Shown: in pieces, positions 6,345 through 48,944 of the stretch
Layout: each line of letters begins with the position of its first letter
How positions within the stretch are numbered: position 1 is the first letter of the stretch
From: Rebecca billardiae RCC1528
Taxonomy: Eukaryota > Protista > Haptophyta
Direction: 5' to 3'
NCBI GenBank assembly: GCA_965240325.2
Contig: OZ251238.1
Span: forward strand, 310,001-374,000
DNA: 64,000 nucleotides
Position numbers and translations under genes: made by a program
Notes under the pieces: model-generated
What the model saw: only the letters and a program-made list of their open reading frames with translations
What the model was told of the DNA's origin: nothing
Databases searched by the model: none

Positions 6345-9300
6345 ATGGCTGGTCGTGGTGGCACGCGCAAGGCGCGTAACGTGGACGCGCAGCTCGTGCA
6401 GGAGATCCTCGCGTCGCGCGAGCCCGTGCCAGGTGCGCACGCGGACGTATACCTGCCGCGACCCCCGCCGCGCGCCTCGCTCGCCGGCTCACGCCGCCGC
6501 GCGCGCGCCGGCCGCCTCCGCCCCCGCAGGCATCGCGACCGACGTGACCAGGCGCGCGGCGAGGCGCGCGCGCGGGCACCCGCACAGGGTGGCGGGCTCG
6601 CGCTCGGCCTCGCCGACGCGCCGCTCCATCATCGGGGCGCCGCGCATCCGTCCGTACGCCACGCCCACGCTGCACGCGTACGTCTCAGCGCTGCCGCCCA
6701 GCCCAAGCGAGCGGCGGCCATGGCCGACGAGCGAGCAGGGCAGGGGCCCTCCCGCCGGCCTGCTCGGCGCGCACGGCAGCCCGTCGCTCGGCGCCGATGG
6801 CGGGCCCTGGGCCCAGATCGAGTACCGCGCCGACGGCTCCGTCCTCAGCCCGCGCTCGGCGGGCGTGCGGCTGCCGCCTCTGGCCTCCGAGCTGTCTGCA
6901 GCGGCGGCAGGCGAGTCTTCTCAGCCGCCCTCGGCCGTGGCGGAGGGCGCGCCGGCGTCCGCGCGCCTGGGCTCGGCCGGCGGTGCCTTCGCCCCCTCGT
7001 CCGAGCCGGGCCGCCCGGCCGGCGACGCGGAGGCCGACGCAGCCCTCGGCGACGACGACGACGAGCGCGCGCGCCGCGGCGGCGCGGAAGGCGCGCGCGG
7101 CGGCGCGCACGGCGGCCAGTACGACGATGAGCGCGGGAGCCTCGGGAGCGACAGCCAGGTGGAGCAGCACGCGGCGCCGGAGCAGCTCGAGTTCTTCACC
7201 GAGATGACCGCCCACGGCCGCCGGCTGCGCGAGCCCATCGCGCTGCCGCCGTTCTGGGTGCGCGGCCGTGCGGCGCGCGCGCGCCCCGCGGCGCGCGACG
7301 CCAGCGCGGCGCGTCTCCCCCGGTCGCCGCGCCGCGCAGCCGCGCCGCCGCGCGCGCGCGTGCTCACGCGCGCGCGCTCGCGGCCGCGCGCCCGCAGGTG
7401 CGGTACGGCGACGTGCACACGCACCTCGCGCTTGCGCTCGGCGCGCACGCCGAGCTCGTCGAGCGGCTCAAGGCCTTCCTCGTCATGTCGGCGCACGTGC
7501 GCGCGTCGCTGCCTTCGGACGGCGGCCTGAGCGCCAACCGGCACGGGACCGCGCGCGCGGCGGCGCTGCGCCGCGTGCTCGCGCCGGGGTCGGGCCGCGC
7601 GACGATCGGCTCGATGCTGCAGTCCGCCGCGGACGCCGAGCGCCAGGCCAAGCTCGCCGCGCGCCCGCCCTGGTCCTCCACCTCGCTCTCGCTGCCCGTG
7701 GTGGCGCACGCAGACACGCGGAGCGCGCGCGAGGCGCAGCTGGCCAAGCTGCTGCGCGCGCTGCGCTGCTCGCTCGCGTACGCGTGCGAGGCGGTGTCGT
7801 CCGACGCGTTCCCGCGGCAGCGGCGGGACGAGGTGGTGGTGCGGCTGCTGCTGCAGCTCGCGTGGCTCCCGCTGCCCCTCGCGCTCGACCCGCTCCTGCT
7901 GCGCTGGTACACCGAGCCGCACCGCAGCTGCTGGCTGTCCACGCGTCCGACCATCGGCGCGGGCGCGAGCGCGGGCGTGCAGCCGCCCGCGCTCGAGCCG
8001 GCGCGCGTGCACAAGCCGGCGGAGCTGATGCGCTTCCGGCTGGCCGAGTGGACCATCAAGGCCGCGCAGGACTCGCGCGGCGGCGTCGAGGCCTCCGACC
8101 GCGCCTTCCGCGTGCACGAGGTGCTGGCGCGCAAGGCGCAGCGCGCGTCGGACGCGGCGCGCGCGCGGCAGTCGATGGCGCCCGCCTCGCCCGGCGGGCC
8201 GCTGCGCCGCGCGGCGAGCGCGGGGCGCTCGTTCTCGGGCGTGGGCGGCGGGCAGCCCATCGGCGCCGCCGCCGCCGCCGCCGCCTCCGGCTCGCGCACC
8301 GCCATCGTGCACGCCGACAGCCGCCAGCGCGTGATCGAGGTCCGGCTATATCAGGAGGCCGAGCTCTTGCTCTATGGCGGGCGCGGCCGGTACGCGCGCG
8401 CGTACGCCAACCTGCAGCAGTGGCGCGCGCTGCACGAGGTGCCGCACCAGAAGGACGTGAAGCTGATGCACGGCGAGAAGCGCGCGGGCGTCACCATCCA
8501 GCGCGCCTTCCGCTACCACCTGCGCATCCGCATGCACGGCGCCGCCGTCACCTTCCAGCGCGCGTGGCGCCGCCACCTGCTCAAGAAGGAGAAGAAGCGA
8601 GAGGCGCTGCTCGCCGAGCTGCAGGCGATCCGGCGGCGGCTGCTGCGCTCGGCGCTCTCGACGGAGCAGATCTTCCAGCGCCTGCGCGCCAACTACTCCG
8701 CGCGCAAGATCTGGAACTGGACCCAGTCCGAGCGCTACCACGCCGCGCGCGCGCGCCGTCGCAAGGCGCTGCGCACGATCCAGCAGTACGTGAAGCGCGC
8801 GCTCGTGCGCGGGGTCATCCAGCGCGAGCTCAAGCGGATCGAGCTGCGGCGGATGCAGGTGCAGGGCTTCGCGGAGAAGGACGCGGCGGAGGCGATCGAG
8901 CGCGCGTACGTGCGCTTCCTCGCCGCGCAGCAGGCGAAGGCCGCTCTGTGCGCGCGCGCCGCGCCGCGCGCGCCGCGCGCTCGCGGCAGACGCGGCTCGC
9001 GACAGACGCGCGCCACGCACGCGCGCGCGCGCTCAGCCGTGGCACCCCCTCCCCTTCCCCTTCCGCCCACGCGCGCGCGCGCAAACGCGCACCCTGCCGC
9101 GCTCGGGCTGTGCAGGTACGAGCAGCTGTGCTCGCGCGCGGCGCTGCTCGCCGCCGTCGCGGACGACGAGCTCATGATCGACTCGCGGCGCGCGGACGGC
9201 GGCGGCGGCGCGGGCGGCGGCGCCGCCGCGGCGCGCGCGCCGCCCGCGCCCTCGTCCACGCCGTCGTCCGACATCAAGCTGGCGAGCGGGCCCGGCGCGG

Positions 9301-12300
9301 CGGCGCGGATGCTCGCCGAGCCCTCCGTCGTCGACGCCGACGGCGTGAACGTCGTCATCGCCGTCGCCGCCTCCGTCGCCGCGCGGCTCTCGGCTGGCGT
9401 GGCCGACGGCAGCGGCAGCCTGCTCGGCGCGCTCGAGGAAGTGCTGCGCGTGCAGGGGCGCGCGGCGTCGGCGCAGGCGGAGGCGCAGCTCGGGCGCGTG
9501 CCGCAGACGTTCGCGGCGTTCGTCGCGGCCGAGCGCGCCGAGGCGGCGCTCGACGTGAGCGCCGTGAGCTCCGCCGCCGCCGCCGCCGCCCCCGAGCTCG
9601 CCGCCTCAGCGGGCGCGGCCCTCGCGGAAGCCGGCAGCGCGGGCGCCGAGGCGGCGGCCGCGGCCGCGGCCAACCTCGCGCCCGCGCTCGCGTCGGCGGG
9701 CGAGCAGGAGAGCGAGGCGGCGTCGATGATCCAGCGCTTCGCGCGCGGCCGGCACGTGCGCGCGCTCATGTCCGCCTCCTCGCCGTGGCAGCTCGGCACC
9801 TCGCTCACCGCGGAGGGCGCGCTCGAGGCGGCGGCGGGCGCGGCCGCGGGCGCGGTGCACGCGCGCGCGGCCGCGGCCGCGCGCGAGGCCGCGGCGGCGG
9901 CGATCGAGGACGCGACGCGGCGCGGGCTCGCGCCGCGGCGCGCGGGTGCCGTCGCGTCGGCGGTCGCCGAGGCGCGCGCCGCCGCCGCCGCGCTCCTCGC
10001 CGCGCACCGCGAGCAGCTGAACGCGCGCGCGCGCGCGCACGCGCTCCGCGCATCGTCGGCGCAGCTGCGCTCGCTCGAAGCCGCATTCCCGACCGTCACG
10101 CTGTTCGGCGGCGTGGGCGGGCACTTCGCGGCGGAGGCGGAGATGATCGGGCGGACGCACGAGCGCGCGGCCGCGGCGCGCGTCGCCGCCGCCGAGCGCC
10201 GCGCGCACGACGCCGCCGTCGCGCAGCAGGCCGCCGACCTACTCGCGCGCGCGCCGCCCAGCCTGGCGCCCGCCGAGTGGCGTGCGCGCGCCAAGCGCGC
10301 GCACGCGCGCGCGGACGAGGCGGACGAGGCGGCGCGCGGCGCGGCGGAGGCGCTGTGCGCGTGGCGCGCGTCGCGGCTGATCACCGCGCTCGCCCAGTCC
10401 GTGCGCGCCCGCCTCGTCGCCTCCTCCTCCGCCCTGCTCGAGGTGGCGCGCGTGGACGTGCTCAAGCCCTCCTTCCAGGCCGCGGACAAGCCCAAGGTGG
10501 TCGCGGCGAGGGCGCGCGCCGAGCTCGCGCAGGCGGCGCTGGGCTTCGCCGAGGCGATCGAGCAGTTCGGCGGGCTGAAGCCGGAGGCGGGGGAGCTCGA
10601 GCTCGAGATCGCCGTGCCCAACCCGCCCGACGCCGGCGGCGCCGCCCCCGCCGCCGCCTCGCTCGACTTTGGCGCGAGGCCGCTCAGTGAGATGCTGCTG
10701 GAGGAGCTGCGAGGCTGGTACAACGTCCCCGAGCCCTTCTCGCTGCGGGTCCTCTCGTCCGCGCCGCACAGCCCGGCCGCGAGCCACGTCGGCGGCGCGC
10801 AGAGCGCCTCGCTCCACCGCGTCCGGCTCAAGATCCCCATCGCGCTCAACAAGCGCAACAAGCTCGACGACGAGTACGTGGCCGAGTGGGACGCGCGCGT
10901 GGGCGCGCTCGCCGCGTCGCTGGGCGCGGACGTTGGCGAGTTCGGGGGGCAGCCCAAGGCGGCGCGGCTGCAGAGCGTGGGGATGCAGCTCGAGCTGCCG
11001 GCGGGGGCGTACGTGGACCTGCGCGTGCTCGCGCTCGAGCCGCCCGCGCTCGTCGTCGGCGAGGAGCCCTCCCTCGACGAGCGCGAGGCGGACGCGGCCG
11101 CGCGCGTGAAGGCGGCCGAGATGGCGAGCGCACGGCTCGGCGCCGACGGCAGCGCGCGCGGCCGCATGCCCACGCGCACGCACCACTGGCTGCGCGGCGC
11201 GCTGACGTTCCTGCGGCACCAGCGCTCGCTCGCGACGTCGGGCGGCGTGGCGCTCGGCGCGCTCGACGACGACGCCTTCAAGGCCGCCCTCGCCGCGGGC
11301 GGCTCCTCGGACGCGGCCGTGGCCAACGGCGCGCGCCGGCTCAGCCAGCCGTCCGCCGCATTCCTGTCCAACCGCGTGCGCTGGTCGCTCATCCGCTCCA
11401 AGGCGTCGGGCGCGCCGACGGAGCGCGAGCTGCGCCGCGCGAAGGCGGACCGGAGGCAGGTGTACCTCTCGCTCGTGCAGGCGCGCGCGCAGCGCCTCGT
11501 CATCGAGCGCCTCCGCTTCGGCACCCTGGCTGTGCTGCGAACGCGCGGCGGCACCGTGCCGGGGACGGACGGAGTGCCGATCGACGTGTGGTGAGCGCGT
11601 CTGCACGCGCAGAGGGGCGCCCCCGCCCCGCGAGCGCGTTGTGCGTGCGCGTGCGCGCGCCGCGCCGCCCTTTTCACACGCGCGTGCACGCCCCGCCCCG
11701 CCCCCGCCGCCGCCCTTCCTTCCAGGTGGAACCTCTTCCCGGGCCGAGCGCCGCCGCGTCCGGGCGAGCCGCACTACGCGCCCGAGCTGGGCAAGGGCGC
11801 GCAGCTCGACCTGTGGTCGGCGCTGCAGGGCGTGAAGGCGAACGAGCCGTGGGTGCACTCGAGCCGGCGGAAGCGCGCGGGGCAGCGCGAGTGGGAGGCC
11901 GCCGTGATGACCGAGCTCAAGGCCGAGCTCGAGCGCACGCACGCGGACGCGAGCGCTGCGGTCGAGGCGTCTTCGGCCGCGCTGCAGCAGACGAAGGCGG
12001 CGCGCCGCCGCGCGTACGAGGTGGGCGCCGGCACGCACATGCTCAACCTCGAGCTGCAGCTGGAGGAGGTGACGCGGCGGCCGCCCAAGCCGGCGGGGAA
12101 GCCCGCCGACCTGGGGTACAGGTGCGCCGCACCGCAGAGCGCGAGGCGCGGCGCGGCGCCGCGCCGCGCGCCGCGCTCTGCTCAGCCACCCTCGCCGCCC
12201 GCCCCGCGGCGCGCGCGCCCGCCGCCCGCACCCCCGCCCGCCGCCCGCCCGCCCGCCCGCGCGTGGTGTGTGCTCGTGCTGCCCCCGCCGCTGCTCCCGC

Positions 12301-15054: not shown

Positions 15055-17901
15055 ATGGCCGACGGGCTTTCCAGGCTGCTCGCTTTTTCGGGGCCCCCCA
15101 AATTTTCGGAGATCGGCGGCATCGCCATGGACCGGCTGCTCGGCTGCGTCCCGCAGGACGACGCGAAGCGCCAGGCGGGCCCTGAGCTGCTCCCCCCGGC
15201 CGGCAGCACGCGCATCGCATCCCCCGAGCTGCGCGGCGTCACCCTCGCCCAGCTGCGCGCGCTGCTCGCCTTTGTCGACGAGCGCTGCGCCGCGGGCGAG
15301 TGGTTGGGCGCCGAGGGCGGCGCGCTGCGCTCAGACGAGGTGACCTTCTACGACCTGGAGCGCTGCGTGGCGGACATGCCGTTCCGCCGCGCTGCGCGCG
15401 GCTCCTCCATCGCCGAGGCGCTCGCCCCGCGCGCGCAGCGCCCGCGCTGGGTCGTGACGCACGCGTGGTCGCTGCGCGTGCGCTCGCTGCTGCGCGGCCT
15501 GGAGCAGCACGCGGCCGAGCGCGCGCTCGGCGAGGAGGCGCCGTACTGGATCGGCGCGCTCGCGCTCGGCCCGCACGAGCTCAGCGCCCCCGCGCCGCTC
15601 CGCGCCGACGGCGCCGTCGCGCGCGCCCTCGCCGGCCCGTTTGCGCGCGCCCTCGCGCTCGACGGCTGCGCGGGCACGGTGGCGGTCGTCGACGCGGACG
15701 GCGCGGCGCTCGGGCGGAAGTGGGTGCTGCTCGAGCTGTTCGTCGGGCTGACCGAGCCGGCCGAGGGCACGCCCCGCCTGGTCGACTGCTACGCCGTCCA
15801 GGATGCCGATGATCCGCACGGCCCGCCTTCGCCCACGCCGGGCACGCGCGGCGGCGGCTTTGGCGGAGGCGGCCCGCCTTCGCCTACGCCCGGCGCGCGC
15901 GGCGGCGGCTTTGGCGGAGGCGGCCCGCCTTCGCCCACGCCGGGCACGCGCGGCGGCGGCTTTGGCGGAGGCGGCCCGCCTTCGCCTACGCCCGGCGCGC
16001 GCGGCGGCGGCTTCGGTGGCGGAGGCGGCCCGCCGTCGCCCACGCCAGGCGCGCGCGGCGGCGGCTTTGGCGGCGGCACGGCGCGCAGCACCGGCGGCGG
16101 CACCGCGCGCCGCTCGCGCCGCAGCCGCAGGCCGCCAGCCGTCGTCGGGCTGACGGACGGGCCCGCCGAGATCGACGCTGCGCGCAACACGCGCAACCGC
16201 GGCGTGCGCGCCGAGCAGGCGGCGCGCGAGGCCGCGTTCCCCGGGGCCGTGCTGCGCGCCGCGCAGCGCGCCGAGCTCGCCTCCGCACGCGCGACGCGCG
16301 ACACGGACGGCGCGGCCATCGACGGCGCGGCGGCGCACGGCGCGGCGGAGGGTGTGCTGCCGCAGCTCGACTCGACAGTGCGCGCGCACTTCAGCGCGCG
16401 CGAGCTGGGGCTGTGCATGGTGGACGGCCCCGTGCGCGAGCTGCGCGGCCTCGCCGCCGAGCTGCGCGCCTCCGCGCTGCGGCGCGTGCTCGTGCACCCG
16501 CCGCCGCGCGCCGAGGCCCAGCAGCACGGGGGCGGCATCGCGCCGCTCATCGCCGCGCGCTACCTGGCGGAGGGCCTGCCGGAGAGCGCCGCCGAGATCG
16601 AGATCTCGGGCGTGGACGCGGGGGTGCTGCAGGGGGTCGGGCGCGTGCTGCGGCACGGCCGCGTGCGCGCGCTCTCGCTCACGCGGCTCAAGCTGCGCAA
16701 GTCCGACATCGAGCTGCTCGCGCGCGGCCTGCGCGTGGCCGCCGAGCGCGCCGCGGCCGACGCGGCCGCCGCCGACGCCGCCGACGCCGGCGCGAGGGCG
16801 CGCGAGCGGCCGCCTCCGTACGAGGGCCTGCACGAGCTCGTGCTGCAGGGCGCGCACCTGCGCGACGCGGCGCTGCCCGAGCTGTGCGCCGCGCTCGGCC
16901 GCCACGCCCGCCTGCGCGTGCTCTCGCTCGACTCCACAGGCCTGAGCGCGGACGGCGCCGCAGACGTGGCAGACGCGCTGCTCGGCGGCGTGCGCGGCCT
17001 GCGAGTGCTCACGCTGCACGCCAACGCGATCGGGCCGCACGGCGCGCGCGCGCTCGCGCACGCGCTCGAGGCGCAGCCGTCGCTGCGCGTGCTCACGCTC
17101 GACTCGAACGCGATCGGCGACGCCGGCGCCGCCGCGCTCTCGCGCGCGCTCGGCGCGCTCGGCGCGCTCACCCGGCTCGATCTCGACGACAACGAGATCA
17201 GCGATCTGGGCGCGCGCGCGCTCGGCGCCAGCCTCGCGCAGCAGGGGTCGCTGCAGCGGCTCTCGATCTCGGGCAACCCGCTGGGCGAGGGCGGCGGCTC
17301 GGAGCTCGTCGGCGCGCTCGAGCAGCACCTCGGGCTGCGCGCGCTCGAGCTCGACGACACCGGCCTGCGCGACGGTGGCGTGCGCGCGCTGTGCCACGCG
17401 CTGCGCGAGCACTCGCAGCTTGAGCAGCTGCGGCTCGCGGGCAACGAGCTCGGCGCCGCCGCGGGCGCCGAGCTCGCGCGCGGGCTCGGGCGGTTCGGCG
17501 AGGCGCTGCGCGAGCTCGATCTGTCGGGCAACCGGCTCGGCGACGCCGCCGCCGCCGAGCTCGCCGCCTCCCTCGGCCGGAACTGCCCCCGGCTCGAGTC
17601 GCTCGCCCTCGGGTACGGCAACGCGTGCGCCGATCGCGCGGCGCGCGCGCTCGGCGCGATGCTGCCACACACGCGCGCGCTGCACTCCCTGCAGCTGCGG
17701 CACAACGACGTGCGCGACGCGTCCGCGCTGGAGGAGGCGCGCGCGCACCACCCGCTCCCGCTGTCCCTCGACCTGCTCGGCAACCCGCTCGGAGAGCCGC
17801 CGCCCCAACGGCCGTTTGCGCCGGGCGGCTCGAGCGCGTCGCTCACGAGCGCGCTCGACGCGATGATGCACTCGTCGCCCTACCACGCACGGGCGTCATG
17901 A
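15055..17901 (+). CDS. N-terminal TIR/HET-like domain plus ribonuclease-inhibitor-type LRR protein
   Basis: Intronless 948 aa. The N-terminus has RGVTLAQL…WVVTHAWS…YWIGALALGPH…GRKWVLLE. The C-terminus has about 11 28-aa LRRs (LxxLxLxxNxIGDxGAxALxxAL). Confidence 0.8.
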   Translation: MADGLSRLLAFSGPPKFSEIGGIAMDRLLGCVPQDDAKRQAGPELLPPAGSTRIASPELRGVTLAQLRALLAFVDERCAAGEWLGAEGGALRSDEVTFYDLERCVADMPFRRAARGSSIAEALAPRAQRPRWVVTHAWSLRVRSLLRGLEQHAAERALGEEAPYWIGALALGPHELSAPAPLRADGAVARALAGPFARALALDGCAGTVAVVDADGAALGRKWVLLELFVGLTEPAEGTPRLVDCYAVQDADDPHGPPSPTPGTRGGGFGGGGPPSPTPGARGGGFGGGGPPSPTPGTRGGGFGGGGPPSPTPGARGGGFGGGGGPPSPTPGARGGGFGGGTARSTGGGTARRSRRSRRPPAVVGLTDGPAEIDAARNTRNRGVRAEQAAREAAFPGAVLRAAQRAELASARATRDTDGAAIDGAAAHGAAEGVLPQLDSTVRAHFSARELGLCMVDGPVRELRGLAAELRASALRRVLVHPPPRAEAQQHGGGIAPLIAARYLAEGLPESAAEIEISGVDAGVLQGVGRVLRHGRVRALSLTRLKLRKSDIELLARGLRVAAERAAADAAAADAADAGARARERPPPYEGLHELVLQGAHLRDAALPELCAALGRHARLRVLSLDSTGLSADGAADVADALLGGVRGLRVLTLHANAIGPHGARALAHALEAQPSLRVLTLDSNAIGDAGAAALSRALGALGALTRLDLDDNEISDLGARALGASLAQQGSLQRLSISGNPLGEGGGSELVGALEQHLGLRALELDDTGLRDGGVRALCHALREHSQLEQLRLAGNELGAAAGAELARGLGRFGEALRELDLSGNRLGDAAAAELAASLGRNCPRLESLALGYGNACADRAARALGAMLPHTRALHSLQLRHNDVRDASALEEARAHHPLPLSLDLLGNPLGEPPPQRPFAPGGSSASLTSALDAMMHSSPYHARAS
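15820..16077 (+). repeat. Coding minisatellite, about 51 bp x5 (GPPSPTPG[T/A]RGGGFGGG)
   Basis: Tandem repeat read directly within the LRR gene. Confidence 0.9.
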
Positions 17902-18097
17902 GTGGCCGCGCACGCCGGGGGCGGGGCCCGTCGCCGTCGCCGTCGCCGCGTAGGACGCCACCTGCCTAAAGACTCCGTATTAGGGAGCGAGCACTGATCG
18001 GCGCGCCATTCACAGCTCGCCCATATATATATATATGACATACCGTTGCCAACTCTGCTAAGTCCGAGTCTCACTCTCAGACTCAGTCGATCAGACT

Positions 18098-18670
18098 TCA
18101 GAGCGGCGGCAGCAAAGCCACGACCAGCAGCCTCCAGCTCGCAATCACTGTGGCTGAGCCAACGACAAAGCCAACCTCGCCGTCAAGAGGCAGCTGCAGC
18201 GCCGAACAGACCGCAAGGAGGGCCAGACTGGACCCCAGCCAGGCCGCGAACAGCGGGAGGATCGCCTGCGCGGAAGGCAGCGCTCGTGTCACGCTGATGC
18301 GGTATCCGCCGAGTGCCTCGACAATGGCCACCCACAGAGCAGCGAGTGCTAGGCCCTGCAGCGGCGCCGCAAACACGGGGGGCTCTTGTATGAACAGGGC
18401 CGGCTGGGCCTTTGCGAGAGGGGAAAGCCAGACGTCCACGAACCCCTGGACCGCGCCGTAGCCCACCAAGACGCAGGCATCGCCTCGCAGTGCCAGCGCG
18501 TCAGATTCGTCTCCACCGTTTGCAGAGAGCTGCGGCCACACGCGGCGCCCTGAGGTGGCGGCGTGCAACGGCCGACGGAGTTGCTGCTGATGAGACCACG
18601 CTGCCGCTTGCACCGCGAGAAGAAGGCCAAGACAGATCCGCCATGCCCGTCGGCTTTGAGATGCCGCCAT
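18098..18670 (-). CDS. Small multi-pass membrane protein, probably plastid-targeted (DUF3054-like)
   Basis: 190 aa: signal peptide (…LLLAVQAAAW), basic transit-like stretch, then about 4 hydrophobic segments starting GD and ending WR. Confidence 0.6.
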   Translation of the reverse strand: MAASQSRRAWRICLGLLLAVQAAAWSHQQQLRRPLHAATSGRRVWPQLSANGGDESDALALRGDACVLVGYGAVQGFVDVWLSPLAKAQPALFIQEPPVFAAPLQGLALAALWVAIVEALGGYRISVTRALPSAQAILPLFAAWLGSSLALLAVCSALQLPLDGEVGFVVGSATVIASWRLLVVALLPPL

Positions 18671-18734
18671 GCTGACGACCGACGACGACGCCTACGGTAT
18701 GGTTGTAGTAGTATGTTTTAGTACGGACGACGGT

Positions 18735-20549
18735 ATTGTCATTTGCTCTGGTTCGCAAGTTTGGGCCGAGCGCGGCGCCGCAGGGGGCAGAGGCCTCGAG
18801 GGCCTCCACCCCCCCCGACACCGCGCGCACCCAGGCCATGCCCACCCAGCAACCAGCCGGGTGGGAGGGCAGGGAGAAACAACTCCCAGAGGAGGGGCAG
18901 CCACCAGCGCCGCGGTGACCCAGCAGCCACGCCGGCCGCCGAGCCGCGGATGCAGCCAGCGAGCGCGCGCAGAGAGGCGCATCGCTTGCCAAGCTACTGC
19001 GCGGATCCGCGCCCACCCCCTGTCCGGGCCTGGCTCGGCTTGACGACCGGAAAACCTTCGGGCAGCCGGACCCGGGCTGCCAGCCCGCCCTCATGAGGGC
19101 TACCGGTGAGTTATACCCGCATAACCGAGCGGTTATACAACCATAACTCACTCGGTAGACCCACATGAGAGTAGATTGAGGTGGGGGCCGCGTTGATAAA
19201 CGCGTGAGGTGACTAGGTCACACCCCCGAAGCCGTCCAGGATGCGACGCCGACCAGAAAGGACTCGCCGATGCATTCGAGCAACTACGCCGACAGAAGCC
19301 GACCGCCTAGACGCCGAAAAGGAAGTACTCGATGGAGCACGTAGATAGACCGCAGGCGCTGGCAGCCGACGCCCTCCCCCAACGCAAGTTTGGGCCGAGC
19401 GCGGCGCCGCAGGGGGCAGAGGCCTCGAGGGCCTCCACCCAGAAGGAGGTGTGGAATGCCACACCCCGTAGGGGTGGTGGCCGGGGGCCCGAAGAGGCCG
19501 AGGCCGCCGGGGGTAGCGCGAGGACCGAAGGCGGCCGAGGCCCAGAGGGGCTCCCCGCAGGATTGTGTGAGGACGAACCCGACGGTAAGTGCGACGAGTA
19601 GGCACAAAGACATGCGCGGCGGCGGCGGCGCAGGCGGGAAGCAGGCGCGAGACACGCACGCGCACGCGTAGCGTCAGATAAGGTAGCAGGTCGCATCCCC
19701 ACACACAGCAGTGCACTGCAGACTGCAGAGGAGGCGGCAGAGAAGGAGAGAGCAGCACCCACCCGCCAGGCGATGAAGGCAAGCGAGACTGCGAAGCGTG
19801 AGAAGATTGCAGACGGGGACGCCTGGGAGCGGTTCCGAGGCGCCCCCATCGAAAGCAGAGCATGCGGAGATTGCAGACGGGGACGCCTCGAAGCGGTTCC
19901 GAGGCGCCCCCATCGAAAGCAGAGCATGAGAAGATTGCAGACGGGGACGCCCCGAAGCGGTTCCGAGGCGCCCCCATCGAAAGCAGAGCATGAGAAGATT
20001 GCAGACGGGGACGCCCCGAAGCGGTTCCGAGGCGCCCCCATCGAAAGCAGAGCATGGGACGATTGCAGACGGGGACGCCTCGAAGCGGTTCCGAGGCGCC
20101 CCCATCGAAAGCAGAGAGCACCCGGAGGGGTCCGAGGTGCCCTCGCAGAGAGCAGAAGCGACAGACAGCCCGATCGCGCGTTGGCAGCAAGCAGGGCAGG
20201 TGCACGAGTGGAGAGAGCGAGGGCTGAGGGCGGCCTACCGCCGACGCACACGCACCTGGAAGAAACAACTCCCAGAGGAGGGGCAGCCACCAGCGCCGCG
20301 GTGACCCAGCAGCCACGCCGGCCGCCGAGCCGCGGATGCAGCCAGCGAGCGCGCGCAGAGAGGCGCATCGCTTGCCAAGCTACTGCGCGGATCCGCGCCC
20401 ACCCCCTGTCCGGGCCTGGCTCGGCTTGACGACCGGAAAACCTTCGGGCAGCCGGACCCGGGCTGCCAGCCCGCCCTCATGAGGGCTACCGGTGAGTTAT
20501 ACCCGCATAACCGAGCGGTTATACAACCATTGTCATTTGCTCTGGTTCG
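18735..20549. mobile_element. Non-autonomous retroelement with split direct repeats (Penelope-like TOC1/MRC1 type, or Ngaro type) and a 21-bp TSD
   Basis: ATTGTCATTTGCTCTGGTTCG occurs at 18735-18755 and 20529-20549. A 58-bp repeat lies at 18754-18811 = 19383-19440 and a 270-bp repeat at 18875-19144 = 20261-20530. There is an internal 64-bp tandem array and no credible ORF. Confidence 0.8.
19801..20116. repeat. 64-bp tandem repeat x5, each unit hairpin-forming
   Basis: GATTGCAGACGGGGACGCC starts at 19805, 19869, 19933, 19997 and 20061. GGGGACGCCTCG pairs with CGAGGCGCCCCC. Confidence 0.95.
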
Positions 20550-20667: not shown

Positions 20668-23600
20668 ATGCGCGCGGCGAAAGCGCGCCGGCGTGGCGGC
20701 CGCGCGCTCGCGGCGCTTGCGCTCGTGAGCGCGTGCCGTGCGCATCTAGTCGTGCGCGATGGCCCCGCGCAATTCCTCGGCCTCGAGCTTGTGGCCGGGC
20801 CGATGCGCTTCTCGCCCGCGCACTTTGACGTGCTCGCGCCGATGCTCGTCACGCGGCCGGGCGAGTGGGCGTACGACGCGTGCCCGCCGAGGTACATGGG
20901 CACGCGTGACCTGCGCGGCACGATCGTCGTGCACCTCAGTCCCGCCTTCGAGCGCTGCAGCCTCGAGCAGCACGCGCGCGGCGCGGGCGTGCTCGGCGCG
21001 CTTGGCTGGGCCGCGTTCAGCTTCGACGCGACCGCCGGCTTCGGGCGCGAGCCGGGCGGTATCCGGTACTGGAGCCACGCCGCCGACTCGCGCGACTTGC
21101 CCGAGCCCCCCGCCTTCGACCTGAACCAGCGCGCCGCGCTGCCGCTGATGACGCACCTGCGCGACCGCGGCGGCTCGGTGCGCGTGAGCGTGCGCCCGTC
21201 GCGCACGCCGTGGGAAGCGATGTGGGAGCACCCGCTGGCCATCGGCCTCGCCGCCGTCGTGGGCGTGCAGAGCGGGCTCAACGCGCTCTACGCCGTTTTC
21301 GCCCTCGCCCGCGTCATGCGCGACGTGGGTGGCCCCCGCATCGACGTAGCGCAGGCGGCCCTCGCGCTCGAGGCCGCGGCCAACGGCGGGCGCGTCGCCG
21401 CGCAGCTCAACCCGTTCCTCCGGCTGCGCTGGTACGACTACGAGACGGCGCTGCGGCTGCAGCTCGTGCCGGAGGTGCTGAGCACGTGCGCGACCGCGCT
21501 GCTACTCGTCTTCGTCGCGCAGGCCGCCGCCAACGCCGGCCTCGCCTCGCTGCGCGTGACGCGCCCCGCGTACCAGCGCGCGCTGTGCGCGCTCGTGCTC
21601 GCGCTGAGCGGGCTGCTCGCCGCGGCCGAGGTGACACGCGCGCTGGGCGCGCGGCTGCTCGGCGCGAACTCCCTGCGGGTCGTAATGGTTGCGGGCGCGA
21701 CCCTCCCGCTCGTCGTGGTGGCCGTCGCGCTCCACGCCGACCGCATGATCCGGCGCTCGCTCGCGGACGCGCCCGCGCTGCTCGTGCGCGCGCTGCTGTG
21801 GCGCGTGCGCACCTCGCTGCTGCTCTCGTGCCTCGCGGCCGGCGTGGGCGCCGCGTTCCCGATCGCGTACGTGCGGCCGTGGGTGTGCGTCGGCGTCTTC
21901 ACCGCGTACGCCTGCCTCTCCAACGCCACCTCGTACGTCCAGATCAGCGCCGTCGTCGGCTCCACGTCCCGCTTCAGCCCGCTAGCCAAGGCGGCGCGCG
22001 CGCTCGGCTCGCCCTGCGCGCCGCGGCTGCAGCATCTGCGGCCCGACCGAGGCCCGACCTCGTACGCCGGAGGGCGCCGCGTAGGGGCAAGCTCGGCGCG
22101 TGTCGGGCCGGACGCCCCCCTGACCGGCGTCGTGGGGCGTTTTGAGCCCGCCCGCCCCCCACGCGTGTCGAGCCGGACGCCCTCGCTGCGGGGGGGCTTC
22201 CCGGGTGGCGCATCGCGCGTGCGCGCGGCCAGCGTGGACCTCGGCGCAGAGGACGAGCTGTCGCCGCGCGGTGACGAGGGGCATTTGCTTCTGGGCGTGC
22301 AGCTGCGCCACCTCGAGGCGTGGTGCGACGAGCATGGCGTCACGCACGACATGACCTCCGCCGAGGTCGGCCGCATGGTCGCCGCGCTCACGCGCGAGAG
22401 CGGCCAGTCACTCGCCGAGGCGCACGCGCACGTGCGGCTGCCGGACGGCACCGGCGCGGTGGGCGAGGCCAACCTCTTCGTCAGCCACGCGCAGGCGTGC
22501 TCGTTCCGCCAGCTGCTCAGCGCGGTGCGGCTGCACGCCGCGTTCTGCAACCTCGACGAGCGCTCGCTGTTCCTCTGGCTCGACCTCGCGACCATCCGGC
22601 AGCACGACGTGCAGGCCGGCATCCGGCACATTGGCAATGTGATCTCGAGGATCGGCAGCATGGTGCTCGTGCTCGACCCGTGGCACTCGGCCGTCTCGCT
22701 CGGCCGTATGTGGTGCCTGTACGAGGTGGTGCAGTGCCGGCTGCACCCGCACGTCGAGCTGCAGCTCGCGCTGCCGCCCTCCGAGCTGGGCGACTTCCTC
22801 GCCGCGCTCGACAACGACGCGTCGCGCGTGCTCAAGACGCTCTCCTCCTTCGACTGCCGCACGGCCGCCGCGAGCGTCGCGGACGACCGGCAGCGGATCC
22901 ACGAGCTGATCGTCGCCACGTTCGCGCCGCCGAGCGAGCGCCCCAGCTCGCGGATGGCCCGGCACCACCTCAGCGCTGTGTCCAGCGCGGTCGCGGACGC
23001 GCTGAACCAAGCGAGCTTCCGCGCGCCCGGCTCCTCGACGAGCGCTGCGCGCTCGCGCGAGTGTGACGGTGCGGCGCTCGACGCGTTCAACGCGGAGGTG
23101 CGCAAGGCGCTGCTGCGCGCGCTCTCGCTCGCAAGCTGGCGCGGCGTCGGGCCGGCGCACTCGTCAAGGCGGTGCTCGCACTCGGACTCGCAGTCTGGGC
23201 CACCGCCCACCTCGTCCTCCGGGTCACGCTCCAACTCGCCATCCCCCGCCTCGACTCGCAAGTTCCCCCCACTCGGCCTTCGCTCCAACCCCAGCACACC
23301 CGCCATCCCACGGCGGCAGCCGCCGGACGACGCGGTGGCGTTGCCGCGCGCCGACGCGAGCCCGCCCGGCCAGGCGCAGCGCGCGATGTCGGAACCACAT
23401 GCGTGCGCCGACGGCAGCAGCAAAGGTATGGGCACCTGCACGGCCGCGGTGGGGCTAGTGGGCGCGGAGCGTTCGCACTCGATGCCATCGCCTGCGACGC
23501 GCGCAGCCGGCAGTGTGTCGGCCTTGCCCGTCGCAGCCGAGCCTACGCGAGGCCAAGCGGGCTTTGCTGATGGTTCCGATGCGCGCGCCGGCGGGCACGG

Positions 23601-23820
23601 CGAGATGCAGCACGACCTCGGGTCGCTGCGGGCAGCCGCGGGGCGCTCGCTACAGCGCGCTCTCGTCAGCGGCGTGGTGCGCGCAAAGAGGCGACCTCAA
23701 GGCGGCGCCCCCATCGCCGCTGTCGTCAGCCTCCCGGACAGCGGTTCGTCTGTCCTCCCCCGCCTCAGAGCACTCGCCGTCTCGCCTGTCGCGCGGGCCC
23801 CGCAGCCTCATGGCGACTGA
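20668..23820 (+). CDS. Receptor-like protein: signal peptide, PA-like ectodomain, 7 TM helices and cytoplasmic TIR/HET-like domain
   Basis: Intronless 1050 aa. The PA-like stretch is LRGTIVVH…CSLEQHARGAGVLGALG, followed by seven hydrophobic segments at about 21230-21960. The cytoplasmic part reads ANLFVSHAQ…FLWLDLATIRQH…IGSMVLVLDPW…LGRMWCLYE. Confidence 0.75.
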   Translation: MRAAKARRRGGRALAALALVSACRAHLVVRDGPAQFLGLELVAGPMRFSPAHFDVLAPMLVTRPGEWAYDACPPRYMGTRDLRGTIVVHLSPAFERCSLEQHARGAGVLGALGWAAFSFDATAGFGREPGGIRYWSHAADSRDLPEPPAFDLNQRAALPLMTHLRDRGGSVRVSVRPSRTPWEAMWEHPLAIGLAAVVGVQSGLNALYAVFALARVMRDVGGPRIDVAQAALALEAAANGGRVAAQLNPFLRLRWYDYETALRLQLVPEVLSTCATALLLVFVAQAAANAGLASLRVTRPAYQRALCALVLALSGLLAAAEVTRALGARLLGANSLRVVMVAGATLPLVVVAVALHADRMIRRSLADAPALLVRALLWRVRTSLLLSCLAAGVGAAFPIAYVRPWVCVGVFTAYACLSNATSYVQISAVVGSTSRFSPLAKAARALGSPCAPRLQHLRPDRGPTSYAGGRRVGASSARVGPDAPLTGVVGRFEPARPPRVSSRTPSLRGGFPGGASRVRAASVDLGAEDELSPRGDEGHLLLGVQLRHLEAWCDEHGVTHDMTSAEVGRMVAALTRESGQSLAEAHAHVRLPDGTGAVGEANLFVSHAQACSFRQLLSAVRLHAAFCNLDERSLFLWLDLATIRQHDVQAGIRHIGNVISRIGSMVLVLDPWHSAVSLGRMWCLYEVVQCRLHPHVELQLALPPSELGDFLAALDNDASRVLKTLSSFDCRTAAASVADDRQRIHELIVATFAPPSERPSSRMARHHLSAVSSAVADALNQASFRAPGSSTSAARSRECDGAALDAFNAEVRKALLRALSLASWRGVGPAHSSRRCSHSDSQSGPPPTSSSGSRSNSPSPASTRKFPPLGLRSNPSTPAIPRRQPPDDAVALPRADASPPGQAQRAMSEPHACADGSSKGMGTCTAAVGLVGAERSHSMPSPATRAAGSVSALPVAAEPTRGQAGFADGSDARAGGHGEMQHDLGSLRAAAGRSLQRALVSGVVRAKRRPQGGAPIAAVVSLPDSGSSVLPRLRALAVSPVARAPQPHGD

Positions 23821-24179: not shown

Positions 24180-24217
24180 TATTATATATATATATATATA
24201 TTATATGTATATATATA

Positions 24218-24316
<99 letters not shown>

Positions 24317-24317
24317 C

Positions 24318-24372
<55 letters not shown>

Positions 24373-24401
24373 GAGAGAGAGTCAGAGAGAGAGAGAGAGA
24401 G
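24180..24401. repeat. Compound microsatellite (TA)n-(GA)n
   Basis: Read directly. Confidence 0.98.
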
Positions 24402-47542: not shown

Positions 47543-47784
47543 CGCGGTCGGTGCCGCTAAGCCGTCGTCGAGGCCCAGCTGCAGAGTTGTCGAATGTCGC
47601 GCGCTTTCGAGCCTTATTTACCTTTTACCCCTTGATATTGCTTGATAGCCCTTTAGGCCTTTTTACCAGCAAAAAGTAAGACCCCTTGATCGGCAAGGTG
47701 CATGCGTGCGCCGGCGGCCCGGCGCGGCCCCACGCCCGGCGCGACACGCACGTTGCGCTTAGATTCTCGTCACCACCGTGCACC

Positions 47785-48944
47785 ATGGCCATGGACCTCG
47801 CGAGCGTGATCACGGACATGTCGGCCATCGTCGAGTCCGAGGACTTCAACAAGTGGCGCAAGGACTTTGTGGACCGCAACGTCGAGGTCTTTGAGTACGG
47901 CGAGGAGAACAAGCTCGAGTACACGCCCATCCACCAGGAGTACGAGAAGGGGCTGGAGGCGCAGCTCGAGAAGGCGCTGCCCTCGGGGGTCACGATGGAT
48001 GCCTTCTGCGAGAAGCTGGCCGCCGAGATCGCGGGCAGCTCGTCGATCCCCGGGATCGACGACTTTGCGCGCCTCGTCCTCTCCGCCGCGGAGTTCTCCT
48101 CCTTCAAGGAGATGATGCTCTTCGAGAAGGCGAAGAGGGGCGACCAGGACAAGTCGCCGGACGGGCCAGTCGCGCACACAGAGGTGGACGTGAAGGCGAT
48201 CCTCAAAGAGCACGCCGACCTGGCGGAGGGGATCGACGACAGCGCGGACTGGAACGAGGTGAGCACCACGCCCACCACGCGCATCTGCACCAAGCGCGTG
48301 CGGCTGGGCGAGAGCGGGTGGCGCACGTTCATCCTGGGCATCTTCCACCTCGAGCTCAGCTTCGACGAGGCGGTGGAGATGATCACGTGCGCGGACCCCG
48401 AGCGGGTCAAGCTGTGGAACCCGAGCTTCAAGGGGAGCAAGGCGGTCCGTGGCAACTACGAGGTCGACCCGCACGCCCTCGTCGAGGTCGATCTCGACCT
48501 GGGGCTGCTGATCCACCTGGCGGGCATGCCGCGCCGCGTGCTGCTGCGGCTGAGCAAGCGCAAGGACGAGCCGAGGCCTGGCGCGCTCACGCACGTGATG
48601 GTGCCGTGGAACTTAGCGGAGGACGCGTATGACGCATCGAGCTTCGTCAACCTGAAGGTGCGCCCGGCGCTCGAGCGCTGCGCGCGCCCACGCTCCCTCC
48701 GCCAGGCGGCCGTCCGAGCGCACGACGGCGCGCTGCGCTCACGCCGCCAGCGCTGCCGCCCTCCCCGACCCACCCGCAGGCGTACGTGATCGAGCCGAAC
48801 GCCAACGAGCCGGGGAAGTGCACGGTGACGACCTTGGACATGAGCCCGGTGCCCAACTGGATGACCAACGCAACCATCGGCTACCTCAGCCCGCAGATGA
48901 TGGCCGGGCAGGTGCAGCGCTACCTCAAGCACGCGCGCAAGTGA
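47785..48944 (+). CDS. BART (ARL2/3-binding) domain plus START/SRPBCC-like domain protein
   Basis: The BART signature is FEYGEENKLEYTPIHQEYEKGLEAQLE…FSSFKEMM. The C-terminal START-like part reads W…ERVKLWNP…AYVIEPN…TVTTLD…VPNWMTN. Intron at 48658-48779. Confidence 0.75.

Follow-up and report, generated by a model that had tools for sequence, protein, structure and literature searches.

A candidate one-chain haptophyte receptor that joins a protease-associated ectodomain and a GPCR-fold core to a cytosolic HET/TIR-like domain

The question raised by this locus is whether a single protist gene could encode both a sensor at the cell surface and the immune-type enzyme that it would control. The window, that is, the whole 64,000-nucleotide stretch analyzed here (Rebecca billardiae RCC1528, contig OZ251238.1, positions 310,001 to 374,000), carries a long open reading frame (ORF) at 20668-23820(+). 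Its product, the window protein, reads from a predicted signal peptide through a protease-associated (PA)-like ectodomain, a seven-transmembrane (7TM) core and a linker to a domain resembling both the HET domain of fungal incompatibility proteins and the TIR domain. We lean, though not strongly, toward reading it as a single-exon gene for a one-chain surface receptor, with a PA ectodomain, a core of G-protein-coupled receptor (GPCR) fold, a flexible basic linker and a cytosolic TIR/HET domain that would cleave NAD+ or another nucleotide.

In DNA with 72% GC, stop codons are rare and long ORFs arise by chance, and we therefore checked the composition by codon position. The + frame of 20668-23820 has a strong coding signature: across codons 1-850, GC is 0.88-0.99 at codon position 3 (GC3) and 0.39-0.66 at position 2. 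GC3 is only 0.76-0.82 in the last ~200 codons, the low-complexity tail, where the coding signal is weaker. An antisense ORF of 667 aa at 21438-23441(-) overlaps the gene; we rejected it as a GC by-product rather than a gene, the codon-position signal sitting in the + frame. It could be objected that the long ORF is itself a high-GC artefact, either two genes or a read-through pseudogene, since stops are rare at this GC, since so long an antisense ORF overlaps it, and since the linker and tail are of low complexity with weaker position-specific GC contrast. We hold this to be extremely improbable. First, GC3 stays at 0.85 or above throughout the linker. Second, more than 20 homologs at <50% identity have both halves in a single ORF. 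Third, some homolog contigs are barely longer than the gene itself, and gene models of Diacronema lutheri have the same structure.

These homologs came from an exhaustive HMMER search with residues 520-770 against 1.84 billion representatives, which gave 2255 representatives at E<=1e-3, 19 of them at E<=1e-30, a large family without a Pfam model of its own. Word-indexed homolog searches had given 0, 2 and 1 matches; given the 2255 found exhaustively, we ascribe these near-blanks to the word index and not to rarity. Of the 150 best representatives, 19 match residues 1-470 as well by phmmer, and a profile of the N-terminal alignment finds the PA-7TM module or a fragment of it in 31 of the 150, full-length in 22. 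At least 22 distinct cluster representatives, D. lutheri paralogs included, keep the whole architecture, and their sequences argue that the fusion of the PA-7TM and HET/TIR-like parts is real. These whole-architecture homologs share <50% mutual identity and come from sources of 58-71% GC. The core of the tail is the most conserved part, with a mean pairwise identity of 38%, while that of the PA part is 29% and that of the 7TM part 26%. The D. lutheri members are KAG8458467.1, KAG8471001.1, KAG8471002.1 and KAG8466083.1; the best protein identity is 40-45%, and nucleotide comparison with the D. lutheri locus L001 gave no match, so that the window does not derive from the D. lutheri assembly. 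No poly(A) was found at the ends of two homolog contigs, which thus cannot be called transcripts, and a search of viral contigs with the domain and with a 10-sequence alignment found no relative. On our reading, the gene belongs to a multigene family of pavlovophyte-type haptophytes.

Three observations concern the arrangement of the D. lutheri members. KAG8471001.1 and KAG8471002.1 (P0011 and P0158) have consecutive locus tags, are probably adjacent, and fall in one 90%-identity cluster. KAG8466083.1 (P0038, 2405 aa) has its PA-7TM module at 103-523 and its HET/TIR-like domain at ~2112-2300, with 1600 residues between. On JAGTXO010000051.1 (L001:10001-13457, 18047-19000), a 317-aa gene model 4.6 kb downstream of KAG8458467.1 is a 97% identical copy of the last 318 residues of that protein; it looks like a recent partial duplication, which suggests that the family is dynamic.

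The N-terminal half begins, at residues 1-25, with a basic stretch, a hydrophobic stretch and small residues, after which a conserved L-x-V-x-x-G-P opens the ectodomain. Plastid targeting was considered and rejected, the conserved ectodomain beginning right after the hydrophobic stretch. Residues 1-470 were modeled with AlphaFold on a 20-sequence alignment, with a mean predicted local distance difference test score (pLDDT) of 83.4 and a predicted template modelling score (pTM) of 0.80. The model shows a beta-rich ectodomain at 27-187, to which the conserved blocks C-P-P-x-Y and C-S-x-E-x-H-A-R-G-A belong. By Foldseek this part resembles the PA domains of RNF43, ZNRF3, the transferrin receptor (apical), an aminopeptidase and VSR1, with TM-scores by target of 0.55-0.61 for RNF43, ZNRF3 and the transferrin receptor, and its Atlas neighbors include peptidases with PF02225. 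The window protein itself has no Pfam PA match; the D. lutheri paralogs P0011 and P0158 reach 20.3 and 19.9 bits on Pfam PA (PF02225), below the cut-off of 23.9.

The ectodomain is followed in the model by seven long helices (189-220, 227-246, 258-289, 300-330, 335-364, 370-395 and 404-430). In an exhaustive structural comparison with VIA-align, residues 187-437 align with GPCRs at Z 16-19, with a root-mean-square deviation (rmsd) of 3.2-4.3 A over 212-243 residues, exceeding the level where generic helical bundles are a concern. The top 50 structural entries are all GPCRs or designed GPCR-like folds and include GPR6, GPR3, GPR161 and TRHR. A Pfam scan of the window protein found no 7TM family match, so that no GPCR class can be named by sequence. 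We also considered, and rejected, a PA-multipass protein of the signal-peptide-peptidase type, every top fold match being a GPCR. The linker that follows has 7 Lys+Arg within its first 40 residues, and its pLDDT is low from residue 452. A signal peptide, an ectodomain outside and seven helices would together place the C-terminus inside, and the Arg-rich juxtamembrane stretch is consistent with this; a topology with the N-terminus outside and the C-terminus cytosolic is thus supported by the helix count of the model. The earlier note on this DNA, made from the letters alone, had read here a signal peptide, a PA-like ectodomain, seven transmembrane segments and a cytosolic C-terminus. All of these are supported: the basic-hydrophobic N-terminus aligns with the N-termini of homologs, the PA fold matches, the seven model helices and the GPCR Z-scores bear out the middle, and folds, profiles and conserved collinear homologs support the topology.

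The same N-terminal half admits a different role, that of a trafficking or sorting membrane protein whose PA domain binds cargo like those of vacuolar sorting receptors and RMR proteins, with the 7TM part structural and the tail regulating turnover. Among the ectodomain matches are the PA domains of VSR1 and of two PA-TM-RING ligases, RNF43 and ZNRF3. The Atlas also gives leads, and no more than leads, to PA-7TM proteins without a tail in Rhizaria and Zoopagomycota. The GPCR fold is clear, however, and the tail, which on this account would be accessory, is the best conserved part and has an enzyme-like invariant motif; we regard a trafficking role as very unlikely.

The tail domain (225-300 aa) was modeled separately with AlphaFold at pLDDT 91.6 and pTM 0.88, as an alpha/beta core after a conserved helical extension. 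The model is a flavodoxin-like alpha/beta fold whose parallel strands follow the TIR order. In sequence, the elements are a strand with FVSH, a helix, a strand with WLD, helices, the strand VLVLD, a loop, and a helix with W-x-x-x-E; Trp682 and Glu686 lie in the first turns of this helix, which follows the third strand. In TIRs such as SARM1, AbTir and those of plants, the catalytic Glu stands in alpha-C with a Trp four residues before it, and the order of elements in our domain matches this TIR layout. Foldseek against PDB ranks plant TIRs, SARM1 and AbTir first. An exhaustive structural comparison gave SpbK (Z 6.4), SARM1 (6.3), MyD88 (6.2), ThsB (6.0) and nucleoside 2-deoxyribosyltransferase (NDT; 6.0), and a second comparison gave AbTir at Z 7.0 (rmsd 2.7 A, 91 residues, 20% identity) and SARM1 at 6.9. 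Nearly all of the 48 chains with Z>=5 are TIR, ThsB or NDT, and the top neighbors of these three kinds align over 91-118 residues at rmsd 2.7-3.7 A with Z up to 7.0.

Sequence profiles lead to the same two families. Across 148 relatives scanned singly, sub-threshold Pfam matches to HET occurred in 13 and to TIR_2 in eight (best E 0.005), and, repeat families aside, no third Pfam family recurs; ThsB_TIR reached E 0.23 at best. Such recurrence would be vanishingly unlikely for unrelated proteins, but the relatives are mutually dependent, and it therefore suggests a family-level resemblance rather than a proof for each sequence. The HET consensus includes the block W-I-D-x-x-C-I-x-Q and a C-terminal R-x-W-x-x-x-E. 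Both are present in the window protein, and the positions of the relatives' Pfam matches on the profile agree; the W-L-D-L-A-T-I-R-Q block is the source of the HET matches in relatives. Searched against PDB at full length, the profile of the family alignment had a single match, the Paracoccus TIR protein (PdTIR, 3h16) at E 0.045, in an alignment that covers F-I-S-H-A-W and W-x-D. The same protein was the best HHpred hit of fungal HET domains, for which remote TIR similarity and homologs in Haptophyceae have been described (Dyrka et al., PMC4986451). We class the domain as a separate family within the HET/TIR superfamily, outside Pfam HET and Pfam TIR.

Conservation is concentrated in the motifs. 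In a 64-sequence alignment, Trp682 and Glu686 are invariant and His607, Trp637, Asp639, Pro671, Arg680 and Cys683 are at least 90% conserved. The R-x-W-C-x-x-E motif occurs in 112 of the 120 long domain matches, and 45 relatives have the form W-[ILVM]-D-x-x-[CSA]-[ILV]-x-Q. This pattern makes Glu686 (codon 22723-22725) a candidate catalytic residue. Invariance of the Trp and Glu, with near-invariance of the His, the Trp-x-Asp, the Arg and the Cys, is not what would be expected of TIRs that serve as adaptors only.

A purely adaptor role is nevertheless the main rival to an enzymatic one. Here the architecture would be the same and the domain non-catalytic, and clustering of the receptor would nucleate homotypic assemblies, into which soluble proteins that share the domain are drawn. 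The TIR domains of animal Toll-like receptors (TLRs), MyD88 and TRIF work by homotypic assembly, and in our comparisons the filament TIRs of MyD88, MAL, TRAM and TRIF score as well as the enzymes (Z 5.0-6.6). A big soluble pool is at hand, with 59 long fusions in which the domain is N-terminal and 52 short proteins among the 150 best matches, and a second domain-carrying gene (15055-17901) lies 2.8 kb away. Adaptor TIRs are not known to keep the alpha-C Glu, and here the Trp and Glu are invariant and the His, Asp, Arg and Cys nearly so among sequences of 25-45% identity, which looks more like an active site than an interface. HET was itself first proposed to act as an adaptor (PMC4986451). We judge the adaptor role improbable, if not by a wide measure.

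An enzyme with some other substrate must also be weighed: the domain could be catalytic without being an NADase, acting on a different nucleoside, nucleotide or nucleic acid, as NDTs do and as some plant TIRs act on RNA or DNA, and the receptor could equally be one for nutrient sensing or nucleotide salvage instead of immunity. NDTs score like TIRs (Z 5.0-6.0; 1f8x, 6evs, 7o62, 8rh3), the family-specific N-terminal helical extension and the extra C-terminal helices are without TIR counterpart, and other clusters contain fusions to methyltransferases and DUF285. The sequence hints, however, point to HET and TIR_2 rather than to Nuc_deoxyrib_tr, and the best-scoring structures are NAD-bound TIRs, so that we consider a different substrate distinctly unlikely.

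Against the favored reading of a receptor with an NAD+- or nucleotide-cleaving tail stand several results that have to be taken together. Pfam and PADLOC found no match in the whole window protein or its parts, and phmmer of residues 501-800 against PDB sequences found no meaningful match. On Pfam HET (PF06985, cut-off 22.5 bits), the window protein has no match even at E<=10, and its best relative stops short at 21.5 bits (E 3.1e-4). The Foldseek matches to TIRs have E 0.09 or worse, and Z-scores of 7.0 or less are moderate, within a range that is common in structural comparison. When the profile is trimmed to the alpha/beta core, it matches PdTIR at E 0.22, level with chance matches to cyclic nucleotide-gated (CNG) channels; because this match sits at chance level, we claim no sequence-level significance for the TIR link. 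The equivalence of Glu686 to the TIR catalytic Glu (SARM1 Glu642, AbTir Glu208) is presumed. At the second Pro of D-P-W-x-x-P, which 90% of relatives keep, the window protein has Ala. Finally, HET domains have no known enzymatic activity (PMC10890737, PMC10197012).

This balance bears on what the earlier note had said of the tail. The motifs it quoted (FVSHA, WLD, RMWCLYE and the Glu codon) are all where it had put them. Its TIR/HET assignment stands at the level of fold and superfamily, through the TIR neighbors and the recurrent HET and TIR_2 matches; at the level of curated thresholds it does not, the best values being Z 7.0 and, for PdTIR, E 0.045. It had thought the architecture uncharacterized, and in the literature that we searched on GPCR-TIR or 7TM-TIR fusions and on HET/TIR in algae or haptophytes we found no description of such a receptor; UniRef already labels two of the D. 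lutheri paralogs, KAG8471001.1 and KAG8471002.1, automatically as HET-domain proteins. Its further step, to NAD+ cleavage or a nucleotide second messenger without G proteins, is one that we can only infer, from the invariant Trp-x-x-x-Glu and by analogy.

Beyond the architecture, folds, conserved fusion and invariant residues demonstrated above, the favored receptor-enzyme reading would run as follows. The signal peptide would be cleaved, and the PA-type domain would bind a ligand outside the cell. Ligand at the PA/7TM part would change the conformation or clustering of the receptor and bring the cytosolic domains together; their self-association, as in TIR enzymes, would complete an active site around Trp682 and Glu686 (with His607 and Asp639). 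This site would cleave NAD+ or a related nucleotide, causing depletion or yielding a signaling product, and the likely context would be the recognition of non-self or a regulated cell death. Soluble carriers of the domain (the neighboring leucine-rich repeat (LRR) protein and fusions to tetratricopeptide repeats (TPRs)) may act in parallel or be recruited. The narrower proposal that this is a one-component 7TM immune receptor, in which an outside ligand directly switches on a TIR-type NAD-cleaving enzyme in the tail without G proteins, we put forward tentatively, as a possibility that we doubt rather than favor. The features behind these statements are collected in Table 1.

Table 1. Features of the receptor gene and its domain-sharing neighbor, in window coordinates
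Feature	Position	Strand	Basis
Complete intronless coding sequence, 1050 codons + stop	20668..23820	+	ORF list; GC3 profile; collinear homologs over whole architecture
Predicted signal peptide, residues 1-25	20668..20742	+	Sequence; helix 2-20 in model; like layout in 18 homologs
PA-like (protease-associated) ectodomain, residues 26-187	20743..21228	+	Foldseek; Atlas neighbors with PF02225; sub-threshold Pfam PA in paralogs
Seven-helix transmembrane core, GPCR fold, residues 189-430	21232..21957	+	Model; VIA-align; hydropathy
Arg/Gly/Ala/Ser/Pro-rich juxtamembrane linker, residues 431-535, predicted cytosolic	21958..22272	+	Composition; loop charges; pLDDT
HET/TIR-like domain, residues 536-760: family-specific N-terminal helical part, alpha/beta core (~598-705), C-terminal helices	22273..22947	+	Homologs; model; TIR neighbors
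F-V-S-H-A on strand beta-A	22477..22491	+	His607 at least 90% conserved; aligns with D-I-F-I-S-H-A-W of Paracoccus TIR protein 3h16
W-L-D-L-A-T-I-R-Q block, strand beta-B (WLD = 22576-22584)	22576..22602	+	Trp637 and Asp639 at least 90% conserved
R-M-W-C-L-Y-E, start of helix alpha-C	22705..22725	+	Trp682 and Glu686 invariant in 64 sequences
Conserved terminal helix of domain, ~residues 800-830	23065..23157	+	BLASTP block to D. lutheri paralog, E 1e-4
Ala/Ser/Pro/Gly-rich low-complexity tail, probably disordered	23158..23817	+	Composition; weaker coding signal
Neighbor gene, 948 aa: HET/TIR-like domain N-terminal, five Gly/Pro-rich repeats, RNI-type leucine-rich repeats	15055..17901	+	BLASTP; profile; Pfam

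The terminal helix of the domain is split from the core by an insert of ~45 residues in the window protein and directly adjoins the domain in several homologs. In the family at large, the domain occurs alone, N-terminal to TPRs of the kinesin-light-chain type (22 of 84), or C-terminal to multipass membrane modules, and in other clusters it is fused to methyltransferases or DUF285; the taxa recorded for the clusters include oomycetes, haptophytes, chlorophytes, ciliates and ascomycetes. Immune and cell-death effector domains are likewise joined to TPR, LRR and receptor modules, and the modular use seen here resembles theirs.

The neighbor gene, which lies upstream of the receptor gene, belongs to this pattern. 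Its domain is recognized by BLASTP at E 3e-4 and, at E 1.9e-8, by a profile from which window sequences were left out; the His, Trp and Glu are conserved in it, and Gly stands in place of the Asp of W-x-D. Its LRRs match Pfam LRR_6 at 8.4e-17, its five near-identical repeats read P-P-S-P-T-P-G-x-R-G-G-G-F-G-G-G-G, and no NB-ARC or NACHT domain was detected in it. Between the two domain-carrying genes, at 19795-20116, stand five 64-bp tandem units (95% matches), within a region called a retroelement in another note. Just downstream of the receptor gene, the microsatellites (TA)66 and (AG)41 lie side by side at 24183-24401 in a local GC trough of 0.58. Elsewhere in the window, coding signal was found for a protein with an ARL2-binding BART domain at 47680-48786(+) (E 9e-20) and for a 1487-aa protein with an IQ motif at 7131-11591(+); four more long ORFs have coding-like composition and no Pfam match. 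No defence island is obvious, the flanking ORFs of the window carrying just an IQ motif, a BART domain, or nothing.

TIR enzymes have a central place in the immunity of bacteria, plants and animals, and the family to which this gene belongs would add a new, HET/TIR-like type of effector to the receptor-enzyme fusions of protists. The contribution of this particular locus is modest: the pairing of a receptor gene with a gene for an LRR protein that has the same domain. The family offers a candidate system of innate immunity or cell death in haptophytes, whose interactions with viruses and bacteria are poorly understood at the molecular level. Were the 7TM receptor to switch on an NAD-cleaving tail, the outcome would be a nucleotide second messenger or a collapse of NAD+, in a haptophyte counterpart of signaling by TLRs and by plant TIR-type nucleotide-binding LRR receptors (TNLs), and it could reveal the biochemistry of HET domains. 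The domain, soluble, well folding and with a clear candidate catalytic Glu, would be a test bed for HET-type biochemistry.

The comparison with known systems begins with the fungal HET proteins (PF06985; HET-E, TOL and BH of Podospora and Neurospora). These share with the window protein a three-block pattern, a hydrophobic-S-H/Y strand, W-I-D-x-x-C-I-x-Q and R-x-W-x-x-x-E, and as in the family described here their domain is fused to repeat sensor domains. In fungi, however, the domain is N-terminal to NACHT, WD or lectin modules, whereas here it is C-terminal to a 7TM receptor; it also has an extra conserved N-terminal helical part, and no tested member reaches the Pfam cut-off. The mechanism by which HET domains kill cells is still unknown (PMC10890737).

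The catalytic TIRs (SARM1, AbTir, SpbK, ThsB, plant TNLs and TIR-only proteins) are the best structural neighbors, at Z 5.5-7.0. The invariant W-x-x-x-E stands likewise at the start of the third helix, and F-x-S-H-A-W and W-x-D align with a bacterial TIR. Unlike them, our domain is ~100 residues longer, its sequence similarity is non-significant when taken alone, and its function is predicted. The PA-TM-RING ligases RNF43 and ZNRF3 have an ectodomain of like fold, but with a single membrane helix and a RING effector, and sequence similarity to these and other PA-domain membrane proteins is sub-threshold and confined to paralogs.

In whole architecture, the protein resembles the GPCR-bigrams of protists (GPCR-PIPK/RpkA, GPCR-AC, GPCR-PDE and GPCR-TKL), which are known from unicellular eukaryotes including haptophytes (PMC5784254, PMC6033456, PMC12716839) and among which, in those studies, no TIR or HET type appears. 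As in the window protein, a 7TM core of GPCR fold is joined in them to a cytosolic C-terminal catalytic or signaling domain, and 20668-23820 encodes just the arrangement that defines a bigram, a GPCR-fold core and then a cytosolic accessory domain in one polypeptide. In logic, the Toll-like and IL-1 receptors are the same: a single chain has its binding domain outside the cell, crosses the membrane and places a TIR-superfamily domain in the cytosol. The TIRs of these animal receptors act as adaptors. They cross the membrane with a single helix and their ectodomains are of LRR or Ig type, where the haptophyte protein has seven helices and a PA ectodomain.

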